A DNA stretch of 64,000 nt. It comes from Paramoeba atlantica (lineage: Eukaryota > Protista > Discosea). The notes beneath the pieces are model-generated. The model worked only from the letters and a program-made list of their open reading frames with translations, made no database searches and was not told the DNA's origin. This document shows positions 44 to 57,487 of this stretch, in pieces. A program made the position numbers and the translations under genes. The stretch is from assembly GCA_977017575.1 (NCBI GenBank), contig CDRNVI010000003.1, positions 62,001 through 126,000 of the forward strand, read 5' to 3'. Each line of letters opens with the position of its first letter. Position 1 is the first letter of the stretch.

Positions 44-2446
44 TTAGCAAGCATTAACCACTTCCTGTACCAATGTTAAGACCGAATCAAAGGCAAGATG
101 GGAAAGCCTACACCAGTACGGAGCCAAACAGCCGATACCTCTATGTATTGAAGGAGTCGAAATGCCGTAAAGAACTTTACAATATTGAATTGGAGAAAGG
201 GTCAACTCCTTTGCACTTTTTACCAAAGAACGTACACACGATTCATTCTCATTGCTGATTGTTTGGGAGTTAAGCATGTACATATAATTATCGGAAATAT
301 CATCTTCGCCAGAACAACTTGGGCGAAGAGAACTCATGTAATGACTCAAAGACTCGTGAGATTTTTCAGAATCTTGATTCAAGAAAAGCGAAAGCAATAT
401 TCGGTAAAGTTTATCTAATCGTGTGAAATCCAAAGCTCTACGATCAGAAAGCGCACGAACGAGATTACGAGATAGAAAGCTTAGTGTATCAACTTGAACA
501 TCCTTTGAGAGAACTACACTAGGTAGTGGACGGTAAAATCGTACGTAAAGATTTCGTTCTTTTGCGTACTGCCGCAATCGCTCGGATAAATTGTCGTACT
601 GCAGTTGGGTAACACAGCAAGCATGATAGAGATCAATTTGTTGAGCGGCCCCAGTTTGAAGAGCGCCTTCGAGTTCTTGCATATAGGATAAGAAATAATC
701 GGGAATAGCTAGTTGATTAAGAATTGAACTAACCCCTATATCCTTTGTACACGCGGATGACAGAATAGATTTACGGAAGGATTGGCTGCGACGAGCGCAA
801 AGTGTCGCAAGTGAAGCACGACAGGGGCCAATTCGTAGAGCAGAGGGCAACATGCGATATAAGATATAACATATTCCCATGACGTGGGATTCATCCACGT
901 CCGCTACAACAGAGAGATCAGAAACATCAAGTGCGGCTTCAAAAGGATATTGAACTTTGCTCCTCTGATGGGAGGGTTTCATCAATCGTACGCAAAGTGC
1001 CTCGGCATGCGGACAATCCAAAGCAGGGGAAATAAAGCGCCTGAGATGATTGGCATAGGTTGCACGATCTATAATAACATGACAGTGTGAAATCTTACCG
1101 TCACGCCCAGCGCGTCCGATTTCTTGAATATATTCCTCTATGGAAGAGGGCATGTAAAAGTGAATTACGGCCCTAACGTCCGGTTTGTGAATACCCATAC
1201 CGAACGCTACGGTGGCCACGACGATTTGTGTATCATTCTTAAGAAACGATGATTGACATTCCATACGATTTTTGCGCGACATACCCGCATGATAACATCG
1301 AGCCAGAAAAGTGTGCTGCTTCGCCAAAAATGTCGCTACCTCTTCCGACAGTCGCTGTGTTGATACATATATAATTATGGATTCTGACGAATTAACGCTT
1401 TGAAGAATCGAAAGCAGCAAATCAAGCCTTTTTTGGAATAGAAACGAATTTTCCACGAAAACAGAGCCGTATGCGGAAGTATCCAATAGGTGAGAATGTA
1501 AAAGTAAATTGGTGCGTAGTGAGAGCTGAGAAACCACTGAGCACGGCTTCAACATACGTTGCAGGTCTTGCGTCACTCGGCAAGTAGCAGTGGCCGTCGT
1601 TGCCAATATAGGCTTTGTGGCCGTCAAAATTTCTTGGATACGTGAACACAAGCCCAAATAGCTAGGGCGAAACTCGTAACCCCACTGGCTAATACAATGA
1701 GCCTCATCAACACAAACAAAGGCGCATAACTCGCGAATCTGAAGCAGTCCCTGAAGAAATATTTGATCGGTCGAAAAGCGTTCCGGTGAAGTAAATACTA
1801 CGGCACACTTTCTCGAGCGTATGTTATTAAAAACATTTTCCGTTTTTCGCGAACCTGTCAGCACTACACCAGGAATAGAAGCAGGGAGATGACCAACTTG
1901 GTCATGCATCAACGAAACTAGAGGAGAAATCACTAAGCAGAAACACGAAGGATGGTGCTCTCGAAGGATGGCCACTGGAAGTTGATAACATAATGACTTT
2001 CCCGAACCCGTGGGCAACAATGCAATCACAGAGCGACCATGTAGAATAGATTGAACTACCTCCAGCTGTCCCGGTAGAAAATCATCAAATCGAAAATACG
2101 TTTTAAGTTTTTCCCGAAGGTGTTCTATTGTAAGCGAAGTTACAGTGAGTAATGGATGAGCAGTAGATAAAGTGTTTTTCTGATCGTTGCAACTGTCGTG
2201 CGGTAACTCTGCACACGAGGAATCGTGAGTTGCGTTTGTGAATTCTACGTTTTGTACGAATTTTGACTGCTCTTTTGAATTCGATCTCCTTTTTCTTCTT
2301 TTCGGAGAAGAAACAGACTCGAATATTTCATTTTCTTCTATGGAAGACGTCGGTACCACATGCGATACAGAATTATCAATACTAGGGGAATATACGTCTG
2401 AATGGTGCAAATGAGCTGCGCCTGGAAGGATAAGAGAATTTGTCAT
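44..2446 (-). CDS. RECQL4: RecQ-family DNA helicase, probably RecQ4-like
   Basis: 800-aa ORF with helicase motifs LPTGSGKSLCYQLP, VDEAHCISQWG, VATVAFGMGIHKPDVR and QEIGRAGRDG. The C-terminal YCKVLYGISTP...YWCRLSHLAF resembles the RecQ4 C-terminus; subfamily assignment is tentative. Confidence 0.88.
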   Translation of the reverse strand: MTNSLILPGAAHLHHSDVYSPSIDNSVSHVVPTSSIEENEIFESVSSPKRRKRRSNSKEQSKFVQNVEFTNATHDSSCAELPHDSCNDQKNTLSTAHPLLTVTSLTIEHLREKLKTYFRFDDFLPGQLEVVQSILHGRSVIALLPTGSGKSLCYQLPVAILREHHPSCFCLVISPLVSLMHDQVGHLPASIPGVVLTGSRKTENVFNNIRSRKCAVVFTSPERFSTDQIFLQGLLQIRELCAFVCVDEAHCISQWGYEFRPSYLGLCSRIQEILTATKPILATTATATCRVTQDLQRMLKPCSVVSQLSLRTNLLLHSHLLDTSAYGSVFVENSFLFQKRLDLLLSILQSVNSSESIIIYVSTQRLSEEVATFLAKQHTFLARCYHAGMSRKNRMECQSSFLKNDTQIVVATVAFGMGIHKPDVRAVIHFYMPSSIEEYIQEIGRAGRDGKISHCHVIIDRATYANHLRRFISPALDCPHAEALCVRLMKPSHQRSKVQYPFEAALDVSDLSVVADVDESHVMGICYILYRMLPSALRIGPCRASLATLCARRSQSFRKSILSSACTKDIGVSSILNQLAIPDYFLSYMQELEGALQTGAAQQIDLYHACCVTQLQYDNLSERLRQYAKERNLYVRFYRPLPSVVLSKDVQVDTLSFLSRNLVRALSDRRALDFTRLDKLYRILLSLFLNQDSEKSHESLSHYMSSLRPSCSGEDDISDNYMYMLNSQTISNENESCVRSLVKSAKELTLSPIQYCKVLYGISTPSIHRGIGCLAPYWCRLSHLAFDSVLTLVQEVVNAC

Positions 2447-4947: not shown

Positions 4948-6086
4948 CAGTGGTCGTCACCAATCTGAGAGTCACAAAAATGAGAATGACCCTCTGAAAA
5001 ATGACAAATGATCGTGTCAACGTTCAACTCAAAAAGCCCCTTGAAAATGAGAATGTATCAAAAGTGAAGAAGAAGACACGGAGGGCTCTGCAGCGCCAAC
5101 CGTTAGGGTAGAGTCTCAGGTCACCGACCGTCATTGTCTTGCTACCCCTTCCCAGACCCCCTTCCCCATTCCCAGACGCCAATCCACGCCTTGTGGCCCG
5201 AGCGCGGCTACCCAACCGTAGCTACCAGGACGGGCGTCCAACATCGTGTAGGCGTTGCATCGTGTAGGATGTGTCTCATGCCTCTTTAAGCAGCTCGCAA
5301 TTTAGCGGCTGCGCTGGAGCCTGGTTCAGCTTGGCGGTTCCGGGTCGGTCTTCCAGGGGAGCGGGGTTGGGTATGGGCCTTGAAGGCACTCCTGATCGCT
5401 TTCCCTTTGTAGTGAGGCCGCCAGGTTGCGAGTTTTGTCGACAGCGGGAATAAAACCCCAACCTGCAGGTTGAAAGGCCCACCGTCTGCCAAATACTCCC
5501 GTACCGCCTTCAAAAGTGATGTTGGATCAAAAGTGTTGTTGTTGTGCCAGTCTAGACCTCGAAAAAGAGACATCCGCACAAAAATTCAGCTACGGAAGTG
5601 GTGGGGGTGATGATCTTTTTTTGGGGTCTCTGAATCGAAATCTCAGCGTCTAGGCATTATGGTTTAAAAAAAATTAGCATCAGAACTTTAATTAATTTGT
5701 AAGTGTAAAATGCCTTCTACTGCGGCTTCTCCCTCTGCAACTTCAGATTCTGAGTCACTCACTTAAATGAAGTCTTCAACGTCTATTGAATCCTGCAAGG
5801 AATTCGGTACTGTGGGAAATTTAGTTCCTTCGTCGGGCTGCGTGCGGAGCCATACTTCTTGTTGCCTACCCAGTTCCCCAATTTGTCGTAATAGCCACCG
5901 CTCTCCCAGCATGACTTTATATTGATTTTTTTTCTACTTCTGTTCTATTTCTTGTCAACGCTCAACGGCAAAATCAACACGAAAATGAGAATGGTCGCGA
6001 AAATGAGAATGGTCGCGAAAATGAGAGAGAATGAAGAATTCCTGTCAATGTTCAACTACGGATTCTGAGAATAGTGACGACCACTA
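4948..6086. mobile_element. Non-autonomous Tc1/mariner-type TIR element carrying a SINE insertion
   Basis: TA|CAGTGGTCGTCACCAATCTGAGA ... TCTGAGAATAGTGACGACCACTA|TA; a second left end of the family is at 28723. Confidence 0.72.
5068..5508 (-). mobile_element. tRNA-derived SINE, copy A
   Basis: Alignable end to end with 53247-53670. 10-bp TSD TCAAAAGTGA at 5058-5067 and 5510-5519; tRNA-like head at the 5508 end; CTT-repeat tail at the 5068 end. Confidence 0.82.
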
Positions 6087-8164: not shown

Positions 8165-8780
8165 CGGCCTGGAAAGCTAAAGAAAACACAAAGATTATGG
8201 CCAAAATTAGCCGAGTTTCGGGTAATGGGGTGATTTTTGCGTAGTTTTGCTCTCAGAGCACTAAATCCGATATTTGCGTGTGAGAAATCACTCGCAGGCG
8301 TGAATGAAAGCCGACTAAACGTATTGGGTAGAGAATGCGACTCCAACCACACCATTCCTTTGACATAAGAAGGGGTATCTGGCGAAAACGACGGTGCAGA
8401 ATAGGTCCCAAACTATAAAAATACAATAGGGAAAAGAATGTTGAAAAAATATTTTTTTTACCATTTTTTTCATCAATTTGAGTTTTTTTTCAATCTTTTT
8501 TTTTCCGAAAAACCCGTCCCGCGGATACGCAGGGGGGTCACCCCCGGGTAGGGGGGTGGAAAATGCGCGCCAAGACCCCGGCTACCCCTTCTGCGCTTTT
8601 TTTTCGAAAATTAATTTTTTCAAAAAAGTTTGCTCGATCATGACCCCCCCTGGACTCCCCAAGGGTTCGATTTTTTTTGAAAATTTTTGGACCACCGGAG
8701 CCCCTTTTATATTTTGTTCTTCTATTATAAATTTATTACTGTGTTCCTCTTTATATTTTCACTGTTTTTGTTCACTTTTT
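8165..8780 (-). repeat. Family X repeat body (reverse orientation, partly deleted)
   Basis: Reverse complement matches 14690-15415 (e.g. CGCGCATTTTCCACCCCCCTACCCGGGGGTGACCCCCC and AAATCACCCCATT blocks). Confidence 0.8.
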
Positions 8781-8789
8781 GGTCAAAAG

Positions 8790-9000
8790 GGACTTTTTTT
8801 CCCCCAAAAACTTTTAACTTCGTACTTCCCTTAATAAAATATGCCAAACAAGAAAATGTATGAGCTATATCTTGGTTCTGGTTCTGAGCCTGGACAATAA
8901 TTTCAAATTCATTAAACAGCGGATTACAAGAACTCCTTAATTCACATCGTACGGTGCAGGCTTCTATCATCACGTCATCCAAGGTTCCCAAAAATCCATT
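8790..9000 (+). repeat. Dispersed repeat containing the empty site of SINE copy B
   Basis: Homologous to about 53140-53246 plus 53684-53776; carries the single target TTCTGGTTCTGAG at 8876-8888. Confidence 0.85.
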
Positions 9001-9382: not shown

Positions 9383-9416
9383 ACGATAAAGATACAGTTT
9401 CTGTACCTTGTTGGTA
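9383..9416 (+). ncRNA. Spliced-leader (SL) RNA exon-like fragment followed by a GT donor-like site; probably a pseudogene or relic
   Basis: ACGATAAAGATACAGTTTCTGTACCTTGTTG|GTA resembles the conserved 3' half of the kinetoplastid 39-nt SL exon (...CAGTTTCTGTACTTTATTG|GTA). The 5' AAC[CT]AAC start is absent. Confidence 0.6.
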
Positions 9417-10371
9417 CATTTTGCTAGCCCTTCATTTCTTTTCCCGGAAACGGGCATACATTTTCCTTTTAAATGCCCGTTTCCGGCTGACGGCTAGCAG
9501 GGACTGTCCCTCTTTGTCGTGGAAGTAGGGGACGTACTTCCGACTTTTCACCCCTCCCCGGCTCACTCCTTGAGTGAGTTTTCTTCCCTCCCCGGCTTTC
9601 TTCTTCTCGCGCCTGTCTCTTCCCGGGAGCTATGCGCCATGGTGGCCTCCCTTGAGGACCACTGGGCGTGACTCTGCCTCGCATTATCGCGAGGCAGCGG
9701 TCGGTTGCAGTGCGCCCCTCCGGCTGCGTAAAGAGGTGGTGAGTTGCCTGGACCACCTCTACCGACTGGGACCGAGTCGGTTGCAGTACGCCCCTCCGGC
9801 CGCGTAAAGAGAGGGCGAGTTGCCTGGACCGACCGAGTCCGTGTCGAACCCCCTTTGGCGACATCCGTTGTGGGCGGATTATGTGCCGATGATATCGGCC
9901 GTCGCATTAAGGGGATTATCTCTGCGCCAAAGAGCGCATGATAAACAAACTCTAGTGAAGATATATAAAAAAGAAGAAAAATACTTTCACTGTTAGAACC
10001 TGTATCTAAAGATGTACCACGCGTAGTACCAAATGCTAAAACGTATCAAAATACATCTAAAAACGCATAAAACATACCCCTGCCGGGTCGATGGGTAATT
10101 ACCCATTAGCGGGTCTGTGCGGGTAAATTACCCGGGTCTGTGACCCAGTTACCCGCACCGACCCACACCGACCCGCATCGGCGCACTAGCCATTAAATAC
10201 AAAATAATTTCCTCTTCTTTTATTAAAAGAAACATTTTGTTAAAAAGTACGTGATATTACGGTTGGATTTTTGAACCGTTGCACAAAAAAGCCGTGGGAC
10301 GAGGGGGGGTATGTTAAGTGTCGCAGGCCAGAATAACATACCCCCCCGGTATGTTATCCAAGGTATAGGTA

Positions 10372-12010: not shown

Positions 12011-12527
12011 CACTTGTCTCAGGCAAAAAAAAATCCAAATCATTCCGGATTGCTCCGGATGGTCACTGGCAAGCCAGACCCTTCACAGACAGATTTGGAT
12101 GTTCCGAGGCCGACGTCCTCCACCAGTTTCCGCTTTTCCAAGGCTGCAGCAACGTGCTGTTGCCAAAACGCTGTGTCGACGAACTGTACGTCAACACGGC
12201 TTACCCAAGAGGTGTGAGCCTGGTAAGGGAGCTGGTTCCCTGAGGGGAGGGTCCGAGACGGTCCTCCGAGTACTGGGCCTAGTCGGTTCTCAGCTCAGTA
12301 TCTTAGAGTGAGGCCGCCAGGAATAATGCGATGAGCGGGTTTGAACTCGCCATCTGAGAGCCATGTGCTTCAAACTTTGAATTCTTGCCACTCCGCCACT
12401 TGTCTCAGGCCCAAGAACCAAAAAATACAAATCATTCCGGATTGCTCCGGACGGTCACTGGCAAGTCGGACCCTGCACAGACAGATTTGGAAGTTCCGAG
12501 GCCGACGTCCTCTACCAGTTTCCGCTT
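12011..12527 (+). repeat. Imperfect direct repeat pair of about 125-130 bp (12011-12135 and 12397-12527)
   Basis: Shared CACTTGTCTCAGGC...CAAATCATTCCGGATTGCTCCGGA[TC]GGTCACTGGCAAG...GTTCCGAGGCCGACGTCCTC[CT]ACCAGTTTCCGCTT. Confidence 0.8.
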
Positions 12528-23661: not shown

Positions 23662-24623
23662 GAAAAACTTGAAAACGGATCTGCACTTCGTAGAGTGGTC
23701 GCCGATTTAAACTTAAGCGTAGGAAATGTCAGCCGCATTAAAAATAAATATCTTCCATCGCTATCTAGACAACCAACCGGTCGCCCACGTAAGCTGAGTG
23801 ATACTTGCCGTAGGCGCGTCCACCTTCTCATCACTAGCGGCGCCACAAAAGACGCAGTTGCCGCCAGCAAAAGGTTGAGAGACGAAGGCGGATGTTTGCC
23901 CGGAAACCATTCGGGTTTCCCTTCGTAAGCGTGGTATGAAGGGAAAGAAGAGGGTCAAGAAGCCCTACCTTACGAAACGTCACAAGGCTCTACGTCTTGC
24001 TTTTGCAAGAAAGTACGAGCATTGGACGCACGCCGACTGGGGCCGTGTACTTTTCACGGATGAAACGAAGATCTGCCGTTTCGAGTCGAATGGTAGCCGG
24101 TGGGTTTGGGGAGGAGCTGTCTGAGCGAAACACACAAGGTACGCTCAAGTATGGTGGCGGCTCCATCATGATATGGGGTTGCATGATGGAGCACGGTGTG
24201 GGAACCATTGAGCTGGTTCACGGGAATATGAACGCCGAGCAGTACGTTCAAATACTGCAACAAAAATTGCCCCCTTCCCTACAAAAGCTGAGTGTCACGA
24301 AGGATCGGATCGTCTTCCAACAGGATAACGATCCGAAGCACACGAGTAAGAAGGCTCGCGATTTTTTAAATTCGCAGGAGCTGTGTGTGCTTGACTGGCC
24401 CCCTCAGTCTCCCGACTTAAGCCCCATAGAAAACCTATGGGTTGAACTGAAAAAGGCAACGGCAGATTACCCCGACCCACCCGCAGGAATGATCGAGTTA
24501 TGGGAACGGGCCCAAAAAACATGGGCGAAAGTTCCTCCAAGTGCATGCCTCCCTCTTGTCCAAAGCATGCCCCGTCGTTTGAGGGCAGTCATCAGGGCGA
24601 AGGGGGGACTTACTAAGTATTAA
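23623..24623 (+). pseudogene. Tc1-type DD34E transposase with at least two frameshifts
   Basis: HTH N-terminus; GRPRKLS, VLFTDETK, KYGGGSIMIWGC, FQQDNDPKH and WPPQSPDLSPIEN. There are 34 residues between the second D and E. Confidence 0.9.
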
Positions 24624-25610: not shown

Positions 25611-26028
25611 AGTTCAGATAAGTACATTATGTACCTATTGATTTACAGAAACTAATACTGATATGGGCGTCTGTTATCGTCGTCTGCATATAAAAAACTT
25701 CTACAATGTTTTTAAATTGGGGTAAACCCAGATAAAACCTAGATAACTTGGGCTTCAGGCAACAAAAATCCAACCCTTGAAAAAGAGCAATCCATTCACC
25801 ATCTCATTCAACAACACAATTCTTGGAATTATCATTTTTGGGCGTATCAATCTGTTTTTACGGTATCCGTGTCGTTCAAGAATGAGAACTAATGTACTTA
25901 CCCGAGTTAGTTTCATGAGACTCAGTTCGTATTCAATATCATAGAGTTACAAGTTGTTCTACAACTTGTAGTAGTAGAAGTTGTTCTACAACTTCTACAA
26001 CGTCTTTGTAACTGAACATCTATTAACC

Positions 26029-26896
26029 ATGCCCCAATTCAGACGCCAGAGTATAAGTGATGATACTATACGAGCTAACACGCGACGTTTGCTTCAATCA
26101 AACGTACACTCGCACCTCTCTCAACTTGCAGTTGCCCCGGAAACTGCTCGAAGGCGACCGCTTGATTTTTCTAGAATCGAGCATCTGTTGGGAGTACATG
26201 GCGTATGTAACATGACCGAAGAAGCCTTTTTAGCTCTTTGTGTCCGCCTCTCAAGGTTTTATCGAGCCTCAAAGTTGGAGGCGCTACGCTCCGCCCTCGT
26301 GTGGCGGCAGCTCGAAGACGTACCTATGGAGCAGTGCTGGACACAAACGATCCGTTTTCGAGGACGGTTCAAGGGTGCAACTCGTTTGTGTCTAGATCCC
26401 CAACCCAGAGGTTCAATCACCTTCGATCAACTGAAAGAGTTGACAGAGTACTGCTGCGGTATCGGGGAAACGGAATACGCGCGAGGCCTTGCTATCGCGT
26501 ATTATGGCTTGTTACGACATAGCGAATTAGAGTCGTTACGTAGAAACGACGCTGACACAGAAACTGCAATCCTTCGGATTCGTGGTGGAAAAGGTCGCCT
26601 CCACCACGAAGTCGACATCATCCATGTGCCAGAAGTTCAGGAGCTACTGACTTGCCTCAAGAGAGACGGTACCGCCATTTTTTTTCTTCCTTTCTGAAAA
26701 AAAAATCAAAGCCAACGCTCTGATTCGCACAGCAGCTGAGCATTTCGGCTGGAATCGACGGCAAAGTTGGTCCTTTCACTGCTTACGTCACGGCGGGGCG
26801 GGCCATCTGACCCGGCAAGGTGTTGACCTCTCCACTAGACTTCTACGAGGTTGTTGGATGTCTTCATTCAGTGCTCAAAATTACTCAAGGATATAG
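26029..26896 (+). pseudogene. Tyrosine recombinase, frameshifted
   Basis: GLLRHSEL and IRGGKGR; after a frameshift near 26690, FHCLRHG...WMSSFSAQNY. Confidence 0.85.
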
Positions 26897-34640: not shown

Positions 34641-35663
34641 CTAATAATTGTGTGCACTGTACCATTTTTTCACTTTTTCGCCTTTCAATCTTATACACGC
34701 TTTGAGGCGAGCATCGAAACTCAAAACAGTTTTATCAATCATTTTTTGTGGCAAACGAGACCACGCATTGCGTATGCATCGGATGAGTGAGGATTTGTCT
34801 GATGGGGTCTTCTCGTCCACTACCTCTTGGACCATAGACCAGACGTTTTCTAAGGGGGAAAGGTCTGGTGAATTGGGGGGCCAATTTTTCAATAGATCTT
34901 TCATTCTATTCGTAATATACTCCTTAGAGGCGCGTGCGGTGTGTGCCGTGGCCCCGTCTTGCTGAAAAATACACTTACGTGGGAAAGGTACCTTTTTTAA
35001 CGTCTTAATGTAGGACATGCTCGTGATAGACGAGTCAGAGTCCAGAACAACTAAGTATCTCCACGCTACTCCTATAGCACCCCAAACTTGACATCTAGGC
35101 GCCCAGCGTACTTTTTGACGTGGAGCGGCTTTTTCACCGGGTGCTACCCACATATTCTTTCGGCCATCATTAGTATCAAAGACTTTTTCGTCTGTAAAGA
35201 CGACGCGAGATGTATCCATATTGTATTTCTTTGAAAAGGCTACTCTTTTTCTTTTTTGTAACTTTGTGAGTCCTTGGCACACGGGCCTAGCATTATAGTT
35301 ATACCCCATGATTGAAAGATCATGAAGCACCGTGCTTTGAGACACTTTAGTACCTCCCCCACTTAGTTTATCCTTTATTCGCCTAGCCGAGTTAATTTTT
35401 GGCACACCGGCGGGATCGAGAGGGGCAATAATTTTCTTTATTCTATTTCTTCGAGATTCAATACATTTTTTTCGTTCAGGGCTCAAAGTGTATTCTTGGG
35501 TCAAGTTTTTTTCGCTAAGGTATTTTCTTACAATCTTTACTGAGAGGTTAAAATCACGAGACAATTGCTTTTTTGATACACCTTGACCGTATCTCATCCT
35601 CAATAGAACTTTTCCACTTTTTGTAAGTCCCCCTTTCGGCAACCGATATGCGGATTTAGGCAT
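34641..35663 (-). CDS. Intact Tc1/mariner-IS630-type transposase, DD35E
   Basis: ATG at 35663 gives 340 aa; VVFTDEK, QVWGAIG, FQQDGATAH and WPPNSPDLSPLEN; 35 residues between the second D and E; no stops or frameshifts. Confidence 0.9.
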   Translation of the reverse strand: MPKSAYRLPKGGLTKSGKVLLRMRYGQGVSKKQLSRDFNLSVKIVRKYLSEKNLTQEYTLSPERKKCIESRRNRIKKIIAPLDPAGVPKINSARRIKDKLSGGGTKVSQSTVLHDLSIMGYNYNARPVCQGLTKLQKRKRVAFSKKYNMDTSRVVFTDEKVFDTNDGRKNMWVAPGEKAAPRQKVRWAPRCQVWGAIGVAWRYLVVLDSDSSITSMSYIKTLKKVPFPRKCIFQQDGATAHTARASKEYITNRMKDLLKNWPPNSPDLSPLENVWSMVQEVVDEKTPSDKSSLIRCIRNAWSRLPQKMIDKTVLSFDARLKACIRLKGEKVKKWYSAHNY

Positions 35664-35932
35664 TTTTGGGAAAAAGTGAATTTTGTTTTTTGAAGCTTTT
35701 AAAATGAGCTGAAAACAGCGGGAACGTGGAGATCTAAAAATTTTGAACGACAAAGCGGTGCCGTAACCCCCTTTACCGTCACCCCCCCCCTCACTTGTCC
35801 CGGCGAAAAGGCCAAAAAAGCGGAAAAGGCGGATAAGTCGCGTGGTAGGACAAGTCACGTAGCATCAAGAAGAACTGTATGACACATTTTTGTATACATC
35901 CGTATACATGAAAAAACTCTTTTTCGAACTTA

Positions 35933-53162: not shown

Positions 53163-53246
53163 GCAAAAAATTTTAACTTCGTACTTCCCTTAATAAAATG
53201 TAACAAACAAGAAAATTTATGAGCTCTACCTTAGTTCCGGTTCTGA

Positions 53247-53670
53247 GGCGGTGCGGGCGTAGTTGGTAGACGGTGGGCCTTACAACCTGCAGGTTGTTGG
53301 TTCGATTCCCGTTATCGACAAAACTTGCAACCTGGCGGCCTCACTACAAAGGGAAAGCGATCAGGAGTGCCTTCAAGGCCCACACTCAACCCCGTTCCCT
53401 TGGAGGACCGACCCGGAACCGCCGAGCTGAACCAGGCTCCAGCGCAGCCGCTAAATTGCGAGCTGCTTACGCAAAGGAGGCTTGAGACACAGCCTACACG
53501 ATGCAACGGGGTGGACGACCGTCCTGGTAGCTACGGTTGGGTAGCCGTGCTCGGGCCGCAAGGCGTCGAGTGCCGTCTGGGAAGGGGGTAGCAAGACAAT
53601 GAAGGTCGGTGACCTGAGACTCTACCCTAACGGTTGGCGCTGCAGAGCCCTCCGTGTCTTCTTTTTCTTC
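53247..53670 (+). mobile_element. tRNA-derived SINE, copy B
   Basis: Head GGCGGTG..AGTTGGTAGA (A box)..CTTACAA..AGGTT..GGTTCGATTCCC (B box); tail GTGTCTTCTTTTTCTTC; 12-13-bp TSD TTCCGGTTCTGA(G) at 53235 and 53671. Confidence 0.88.
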
Positions 53671-53978
53671 TTCCGGTTCTGAGCCTGGAAAATAATTTCA
53701 AATTCCTTAAACAGCGGATTACAAGAACTCCCTATTTCACATCGTACGGTACAGGCTTCTATCATCACGTCATCCAAGGTTCCCAGCTACAAAAAGTGAT
53801 GCGGTCATACATTTTACAGCCTGTGCAAAGAAAAATGATAGAGCGGAGTAGTGTAAGTAGCAAAAATATGATGCTTAATCACTCGCATGGATAATACTGA
53901 AATTTTGTCTGAGAAACCACCGTGAAAAAATTTAAGTTTTTTTTGGGGGAAAGAAAGTCCCCTTCCACCCAACATACG

Positions 53979-56618: not shown

Positions 56619-57487
56619 TTATTCCATAGAATAACGTGTTGCAGTGAGTTCTGACATCCAGCGCCCTCTTCGAAGACGCGTGCTCAGATCAACTCCTTGC
56701 CGTGTCAAGTGTCCAGCGCAGCCGTGGCGCAGACAGTGGAACGACCAGGTTTGCTGGCTGTTCCATCCAAATCGCGCGGCCGCGGCCGCTATCAAGCGAT
56801 TGGCTTGCACCTTGTTCCAAGTCGGAAAGAGGCTTGATGTTGTTGAGATTGTTTTGAAGTACCCGAGTAAATGGCGTACTTCAGGTGCTTGTACCGTATC
56901 AACGGCAAAGTGGTGACGACCTTTCCCTCCACGAATTTTTATTAGTACATCGCTTTCGCTGATTTCCACGTCTGATGTCTGAAGACCTACGAGTTCGGAG
57001 TGTCGCAAAAGGCCAAAGTAACCAATTGCAAATCCTTGACCATACGTAATCTCTCCCTGGTCAATACAATATGTGGATAGTACGCGAAGCTGGTCACGTG
57101 TGATGGAGCCCCGCGGCTTGGGGTCTAAACAAATTTTGAGCACCCCTTTAAATCGCCTTCGAAATCGAAGGGTTTGCGACCAACACTCGCTCTCTGGAAG
57201 GTCCTCAATTTGTCGCCAAACCAGGGCAGCGCGAAATGCTTCCAAGGTGGAGGGTCTGTAAAATCTCGACATGCTAGCACATAAGGCAAGGAAATTCTCT
57301 TCTGCCATGTTGCATGCACCATGGACACCCATAAGGTGTTCCAGGCGATAAAATATTGTGCTCGTTTTTGAGCCGTTCCCGCCGAAACGCCCACCTGAGC
57401 GAGCTGTCTATGAATTCCCACTTGAAGAAGAGAACGATACCCTCTCTGAATTTCTGCATCCCGCGAGGTTCGAGACTCTAGTGTCAT
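56619..57487 (-). CDS. Tyrosine recombinase (one 1-nt frameshift near 57350)
   Basis: R (LLRHSE), K (GGKGR), HxxR (HCLRH), W (GRW) and Y (TRYS). The N-terminal MTLESRTSRDAEIQRGYRSLLQ (ATG 57487) aligns with the other copy but is in another frame. Confidence 0.88.

Follow-up and report, generated by a model that had tools for sequence, protein, structure and literature searches.

In the tRNA-derived SINEs of animals, plants and oomycetes, a head of some 74 nt that contains A and B boxes is joined to an unrelated body and to a 3′ hairpin followed by a short repeat; these SINEs are further marked by variable target-site duplications (TSDs), the existence of subfamilies and a high share of full-length copies. 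In the CORE-SINE, V-SINE and Deu-SINE groups, families with different heads share a central core. The short non-coding retroposons RIME, NARTc and SIDER of trypanosomatids, which are likewise dependent on LINEs and flanked by TSDs, are of another kind, being deletion derivatives of the LINEs ingi/L1Tc that retain the 5′ signature of the LINE and end in poly(A). Four retrotransposon clades were recognised in a 2025 survey of 57 trypanosomatids, in which all non-autonomous forms listed were short derivatives of ingi, and the same four were given for Bodo saltans; the Diplonema genome paper mentions SINEs by analogy only. For kinetoplastids, published surveys give only short elements derived from LINEs or tyrosine-recombinase elements, in agreement with the statement, made in a preliminary description of the present DNA, that the known short retroposons of kinetoplastids do not derive from tRNAs.

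The window analysed here, a stretch of 64 000 nt, contains two copies of an element of about 424 nt which, judged from its sequence, is very likely a non-autonomous retroposon (SINE) with a tRNA-like head, spread by target-primed reverse transcription. It resembles the tRNA-derived SINEs in each of the features listed above, but differs from them in that pattern searches of the assembly found no LINE with a matching 3′ end, and in that its head is too decayed for standard finders. With RIME, NARTc and SIDER it has in common a short, non-coding and putatively LINE-dependent structure, the presence of TSDs and the same broad lineage, whereas it is set apart by its tRNA-like head and its (CTT)n rather than poly(A) tail, and searches with its terminal 14-16-mer found no LINE-derived end. 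As in the CORE-SINE, V-SINE and Deu-SINE groups, blocks of sequence are shared by two SINEs of this genome, although there is no sequence relation to the animal cores, and the shared part is short and drawn from the two families compared. Elements of this kind are well known; what is new, as far as the literature and Rfam searches show, is a tRNA-headed SINE in a lineage without a described one. A full-text literature search retrieved no paper on a tRNA-derived SINE in kinetoplastids or this group, and Rfam gave no match, in keeping with the original suggestion that the family is undescribed.

Both copies lie within 1-2 nt of the positions first reported for them, and their features are collected in Table 1 together with other loci referred to below. 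The two align from end to end with 86 % (BLAST) to 89 % (column) identity, copy A differing from copy B by three indels of -5, +10 and +19 nt, the latter two of which are internal duplications. Each has its own TSD, as had been described (10 bp and 12-13 bp), that of copy A measuring 9 nt, or 10 nt with the preceding T counted, and that of copy B 12 nt, or 13 nt with the following G counted. Similarly, both copies end in CTT-type repeats, again as noted at the outset. Within the window, a paralogue of the host repeat around copy B contains a single TTCTGGTTCTGA without an insert, and for this reason is taken as the empty site; comparison with copy B is a direct before-and-after view of an insertion with target-site duplication. 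Copy B also has a twin on another contig, which is 99 % identical and has identical flanks, and an independent assembly of the same organism (ENA contig ERZ24900291 ctg3018l) holds the same genes with copy B at the same site. In the DNA contigs of two runs, a joint that skips copy B (53234 to 53671, with 13 shared letters) was considered as an empty allele, i.e. an insertion polymorphism, but is most simply explained by the 87 % identical paralogous empty site.

Table 1. Positions of the element copies, their parts and other loci mentioned in the text (window coordinates unless a locus or contig is named)
Feature	Position	Strand	Basis or remark
SINE copy A	5067-5508	-	sequence read directly, alignment to copy B
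SINE copy B, full length	53247-53670	+	sequence read directly
5′ TSD of copy A, CACTTTTGA	5510-5518	-	one filler base (5509) before element
3′ TSD of copy A, CACTTTTGA	5058-5066	-	adjoins (CTT)3 tail
5′ TSD of copy B, TTCCGGTTCTGA	53235-53246	+	
3′ TSD of copy B, TTCCGGTTCTGA	53671-53682	+	
Empty paralogous target site of copy B, single TTCTGGTTCTGA	8876-8887	+	host-repeat paralogue 8780-8990, 87 % identical
tRNA-like head of copy B, 74 nt	53247-53320	+	sub-threshold ARAGORN cloverleaf
A-box-like motif GGGCGTAGTTGG	53255-53266	+	element bases 9-20
B box GGTTCGATTCC, perfect	53299-53309	+	element bases 53-63
3′ module, begins GAGACTCTACCC	53617-53655	+	predicted hairpin ACGG..GGC..GCC..CCGT at its end
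CTT-type repeat tail, copy B	53656-53670	+	
SINE array	C40:961000-999000		
SINE array	C87:19800-53300		
SINE array	C71:30500-50000		
SINE array	C61:500-16000		
SINE array	C12:136500-162500		
SINE array	C10:3500-27500		
5′-truncated LINE	L076:4161-6290 = C40:959160-961289	-	reverse-transcriptase frame of 501 codons
LINE C-terminal region	L027:2217-3420		zf-RVT domain, then RNase H-type-looking segment
LINE C-terminal region	L020:1-1210	-	zf-RVT domain, then RNase H-type-looking segment
Second SINE	L017:1443-1500 + 1938-2262		
Second SINE	12287-12401	-	
Second-SINE retrocopy with prefix	L017:1381-2263		also in L024
Leader-headed retroposon, ~0.6 kb	9383-9499		
Leader-headed retroposon, ~0.6 kb	L021:650-1300	-	
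Leader-headed retroposon, ~0.6 kb	L062:1490-1740		
DDE_3 transposase frame	23997-24623	+	
DDE_3 transposase frame	34641-35858	-	
Tyrosine-recombinase (phage-integrase) frame	25981-26697	+	
Tyrosine-recombinase (phage-integrase) frame	56619-57332	-	

The duplications are not peculiar to the window. For 18 copies, the last 24 nt 5′ of the element were compared with the DNA after the tail, with 306 permuted pairs of flanks serving as the control; an exact flank repeat of at least 8 nt was present in 13 of the 18, as against 1 % of the permuted pairs, which extends to other copies the TSDs originally described for two. The repeats range from 7 to 14 nt (median 9.5) and differ in sequence and length from copy to copy, several beginning with TTC, TCT or T. 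The (CTT)n tail varies from about 2 to more than 15 units, with GTCT units in two copies. Mid-bodies are more numerous than heads (159 and 125, both patterns with ≤2 mismatches) and one copy (L030) begins at element base 11, which together indicate that 5′-truncated copies exist. Some 5′ junctions carry a few extra bases, with 9-12 nt of filler in L011 and L020, and the head is partly duplicated in L018. No terminal inverted repeats were found in the element copies. Variable TSDs, a polar tail of variable length and 5′ truncation, without terminal inverted repeats, are the marks of target-primed reverse transcription; with the dispersed copies and the empty site, they support the proposal first made for this element, namely a SINE spread by that route. 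It is, moreover, non-coding, as the consensus has no ATG-started frame and indels between copies break frames. The consensus is also devoid of any run of four or more T, and hence nothing internal would stop Pol III.

With regard to the size of the family, the use of copy B as a query against the 45.7-Mb assembly returned 213 first-look candidates, the 40 of these that were scored being 95-100 % identical. Pattern counts allowing ≤2 mismatches, for which the reversed control gave zero matches, yielded 125 matches genome-wide for a 21-mer of the head, 159 for a 21-mer of the mid-body and 131 for a 20-mer of the tail; these 125-159 matches are spread over more than 50 contigs, far exceeding the two copies from which the family was first recognised. 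Its size is thus put at roughly 130-210 copies, and the family is young. In DNA contigs of three runs, the depth of the element is 10-20 times that of its flanks and many different flanks adjoin base 1, in line with a dispersed repeat. Amongst JGI metagenome contigs there was one chance match, and amongst viral contigs none.

A consensus of 424 nt was built from 19 copies with distinct flanks, which represent at most 17-18 separate insertions, as some flanks come from duplicated loci. At 61 % G+C, in a window of approximately 38-51 % G+C, it accords with the initial portrayal of the element as GC-rich. Seventeen of the 19 copies are 1.9-3.5 % distant from the consensus (copy B, 2.4 %), most of them by about 2 %, the other two being L025 (4.0 %) and copy A (6.0 %), the B box of which is mutated to GGGTTTTATTCC; copy A is an older or divergent member of the GGCAGAC head subfamily. 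Sites 8T/51C/175A/194T are common to an array on contig C40 and an unrelated locus on C30, sites 20T/52G/217A/349C are common to loci with different flanks, and GTTGTTAGAC and GGCAGAC, two variants of the head, are each found on at least seven contigs. Since unrelated loci have these substitutions in common, new copies have arisen from several source copies that differed slightly from one another, and the subfamily pattern is that expected of copy-and-paste spread from few source copies. The SINE is a recently active one. Many of the matches lie in arrays of fixed period (C40, about 14; C87, 8; C10, 7; C71, 6; C61, 5; C12, 5), the members of which all have one common flank, and about a third of the copy number can therefore be ascribed to later duplication of host DNA. 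The periods of these arrays are 1.0-6.5 kb, and copy number within them is raised without new insertions.

The first 73 nt of the element were said to contain A- and B-box-like motifs of the Pol III type, and both are indeed present. Of the 11 positions of the standard A-box consensus, TRGCNNAGTGG, GGGCGTAGTTGG matches 10, and its spacing from the 5′ end is canonical; equating the conserved G of GCGGTG (element base 2) with tRNA +1 places it at tRNA positions 8-19. The B box, GGTTCGATTCC, recurs unchanged in several tRNA genes of this genome. The consensus head begins (N)GCGGTGCGGGCGTAGTTGGTAGACGG and reaches GGTTCGATTCCCGCTATCGACA at base 74. Compared with 24 distinct tRNAs of the same genome, it attains a best global alignment score of 64, whilst its shuffles reach 36 ± 3.7 (z 7.6) and 73-nt windows from the rest of the element 30-44. 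The highest scores are those with Gly-CCC and Thr-CGU, to which the two boxes contribute most; the one Leu tRNA compared lies below both, and no clear parent was found amongst the 24 tRNAs. ARAGORN makes no tRNA call on the head at its default threshold; at 85 % of the threshold it places a cloverleaf over exactly consensus bases 1-74, with a 7-bp acceptor stem containing one mismatch, D and T arms, and a decayed anticodon arm with a loop of 6 nt. False positives are common at this setting, with 12 calls in 64 kb of real sequence, some 5 in its shuffled counterpart and a cloverleaf in 5 of 1000 shuffled heads. Noise apart, Rfam matched neither tRNA nor any other RNA family or ribozyme even at E-values up to 10. 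The acceptor stem, which had been presented as paired in both copies, does form 6 of 7 pairs, but its first base varies amongst the 19 copies (A in 7, G in 6, C in 4 and T in 2) and the pairing thus counts for little. Nevertheless, the boxes and the score, with the sub-threshold cloverleaf as supporting evidence, make a tRNA origin of the head probable. A functional tRNA gene was rejected as an identity for the element, due to the lack of a canonical cloverleaf and a 7-nt anticodon loop and to the silence of standard finders.

A scan for reverse transcriptases gave 1851 candidates, many of them in open frames of 1000-2800 codons. The search for a LINE sharing the 3′ end of the element, which the preliminary description had recommended, came back empty, both for the one LINE that was read and in tail and terminal-mer pattern searches of the assembly. 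The terminal 14-16-mer with a different upstream base gave 12 matches as against 23 for the control, then 1 and then 0, and (CTT)6 not preceded by T was no commoner than in the control. Every tail checked belongs to a SINE body, those that seem headless having SINE mid-bodies. The LINE that was read (L076, on C40) was discarded as a partner, as its end is (TAAC)n and it has nothing in common with the element; its other copies are 5′-truncated to varying extents, and all end at the same base. This LINE directly follows SINE bases 1-310 at the end of the C40 array, the remainder of that SINE not being found in the locus. A tail located 2.6 kb downstream of an intact reverse-transcriptase frame on C30 was also dismissed as a LINE end, since there is a SINE mid-body 116 nt upstream of it. 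A reverse-transcriptase protein search found one relative only from the same organism, a member of the (TAAC)n family, and neither a SINE nor a CTT tail is present in the 21 kb around it. Regions encoding the C-terminal part of a LINE were seen at two further loci (Table 1), and one SINE copy, with a 10-bp duplication and 12 nt of filler, lies just upstream of such a zf-RVT region.

From these features, a course of events can be proposed for the element. Its first 74 nt would be what remains of a tRNA gene after long decay, with both internal boxes (A and B) kept, and Pol III would initiate from these boxes at or next to element base 1, giving an RNA that ends in a small hairpin and (CUU)n. 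The reverse transcriptase of a resident LINE may then use this RNA end and prime cDNA on a nicked target, in which case the T-rich or TTC-like starts of many of the duplications would agree with base-pairing between the nicked strand and the CUU tail. A nick in the second strand 7-14 bp away would give rise to the duplication. About a third of the copies were subsequently multiplied by tandem or segmental duplication of host DNA, rather than by retroposition. The element was not found in the one possible RNA run, no run being on record as RNA.

Amongst the alternatives to such a SINE, tandem or segmental duplication alone, or a DNA transposon of the MITE or Helitron type, is scarcely tenable. 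Whilst about a third of the copies do lie in fixed-period arrays, and the 99 % identical twin of copy B has the same flanks, at least 17 copies have unrelated flanks and their own duplications of varying length; the absence of terminal inverted repeats, the polar 3′ repeat of variable length and the 5′ truncation of some copies are equally at odds with it, and for the dispersed copies it is already contradicted. Descent by deletion from an autonomous LINE, in the way that RIME derives from ingi, would be in line with all known short kinetoplastid retroposons, which are of that type, and the genome has 1851 reverse-transcriptase candidates; such a descent is nonetheless highly improbable, for head and tail matches are confined to SINE-sized units, pattern searches with the terminal 14-16-mer found it in no other element, and the one LINE that was read has a (TAAC)n end and no sequence in common with the SINE.

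Two further explanations concern the head rather than the mode of spread. It might not derive from a tRNA at all, but mimic A and B boxes or stem from another small RNA, which would agree with the lack of a call at standard thresholds, the failure to find a parent amongst 24 tRNAs and a similarity that falls mostly within the two boxes. Since the boxes have the right positions and spacing within a unit of 73-74 nt starting at the element's first base, the sub-threshold cloverleaf covers exactly bases 1-74, and the score with the genome's tRNAs has a z of 7.6 relative to shuffles, we consider this unlikely. Somewhat less likely still is a retroposon that is the same in all else, but has its RNA supplied by Pol II polycistronic read-through, with the tRNA-like head acting as an RNase P processing signal cut at base 1. 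RNase P cutting needs only the acceptor and T arms, and it is these that are best kept in the head, the anticodon arm having decayed; furthermore, the tRNA-like +1 is either the first or the second base of the element. Other short retroposons in this genome start with a piece of the spliced leader and so come from processed Pol II RNA, and one retrocopy of a second SINE bears a spliced-leader prefix. The A and B boxes, however, are intact in the consensus, which is predicted if Pol III reads the element and is not required here. In a genome read as long Pol II units, all copies in the sense orientation would be transcribed in any case. Were RNase P involved, the head would be a processing handle by which RNA competent for retroposition, with a defined 5′ end, is freed from sense-oriented copies, in parallel with the spliced-leader-tagged retroposons of the same genome, the 5′ ends of which are set by trans-splicing. 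Along with the shared core and a 3′ module for which no LINE counterpart was found, this would amount to a lineage-specific way to make and move SINE RNA.

As a tRNA-headed SINE, the family would add a class of mobile element to the lineage and show that the resident LINE machinery was active very recently. In trypanosomatids, tRNA-type A and B boxes drive neighbouring small-RNA genes, and each copy may likewise constitute a mobile candidate Pol III promoter. Polypyrimidine tracts are a class of signal for trans-splicing and the polyadenylation coupled to it; each copy also brings a tract of this kind in its (CTT)n, and RNA processing could therefore be rewired where copies insert. In addition, the young copies, with their target duplications, offer ready presence/absence markers for strains of this protist.

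The body of the element had been credited with several predicted hairpins, but these do not go beyond chance, as the whole-element fold of -168 kcal/mol compares with -162 ± 6 for dinucleotide shuffles (z -0.96). The last 85 nt comprise two small predicted hairpins followed by GTCTT(CTT)n. A second SINE, which is the more abundant of the two (566 first-look candidates), likewise begins with a tRNA-like unit, in which the A box (TGGCGGAGTGG) is perfect; its copies end in a GATTTGG-type repeat or a T-run. Just behind the head, the blocks CCNGGCGGCCTCACT, GGAGGAYCGNCCCGGA and GAACCAGCTCC are common to both SINEs; alignment of their cores gives a z of 3.75 relative to shuffles, with the heads, at a z of 1.96, not being significantly alike. 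In one subfamily of the second SINE (on C65, C24 and C11), the T-run is followed by a homologue, of about 50 nt, of the 3′ module of the 424-nt element, together with a CTT tail, and three diverged versions of this homologue exist. The shared core blocks and the shared 3′ module suggest that both the ends and the middle of these elements are modular.

At locus L017, the 424-nt element lies inside a second-SINE copy and is flanked by an 11-bp duplication. The second-SINE retrocopy of this locus bears a prefix made up of the last ~28 nt of the spliced leader and GTATGAGAAGCT, which equals the opening 12 nt of the SL-RNA intron in Trypanosoma brucei, and a 13-bp duplication, TATGAGATTTAAC, lies on either side of the prefixed unit. 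This unit has the look of a chimaera, formed when the template was switched to unspliced SL RNA, or else of a longer RNA that was retrocopied. An SL-RNA-derived head for the second SINE as a whole was rejected, given that the prefix exists at one duplicated locus only and that most copies start 43 nt further in, with unrelated flanks.

The genes of the window form long intronless frames running in one direction, including those for a DEAD helicase, an MSH6/8-like MutS, a Nup133-like protein and a PSP1-domain protein. Both inside and outside the window there are retroposons that begin with GATACAGTTTCTGTACYTTGTTG. It matches the 3′ part of published spliced leaders of the kinetoplastid and diplonemid type but for one A-to-G change, which falls in their final TATTG (GTTG here). 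The best named relatives of the MutS homologue, Trypanosoma MSH8 and fungal or amoebozoan MSH6, share 32 % identity with it, and ENA proteins 41-42 %. The leader and the unidirectional intronless gene runs are in favour of the kinetoplastid-like character attributed to the genome at first sight. As far as the evidence goes, the host genome appears to be kinetoplastid-like, of euglenozoan type.

The leader-headed retroposons, of about 0.6 kb, resemble the 424-nt family in having the same host and in being young, non-coding and flanked by target duplications. They start, however, with the last 27-30 nt of the leader, followed by GTAC, whereas the 424-nt family starts with a tRNA-like unit and in no case carries the leader. 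One of these 0.6-kb families has a CTT-like end, and the leader piece with GTA occurs 214 times, dispersed genome-wide. The window also contains two DDE_3 transposase frames, one of them with a Tc3-type helix-turn-helix, as remains of Tc1/mariner-like elements, and two tyrosine-recombinase frames such as are found in elements of the DIRS, VIPER and TATE type. Elsewhere in the assembly, contigs C137-C185 (e.g. loci L031-L060) hold very numerous and repeated tRNA genes (3406 first-look candidates), with the same Lys-CUU, Lys-UUU, Thr-UGU, Ser, Ile and Asp genes recurring at many loci. These contigs differ in CTT-repeat content, and at least C166 and C185 match the 424-nt SINE.
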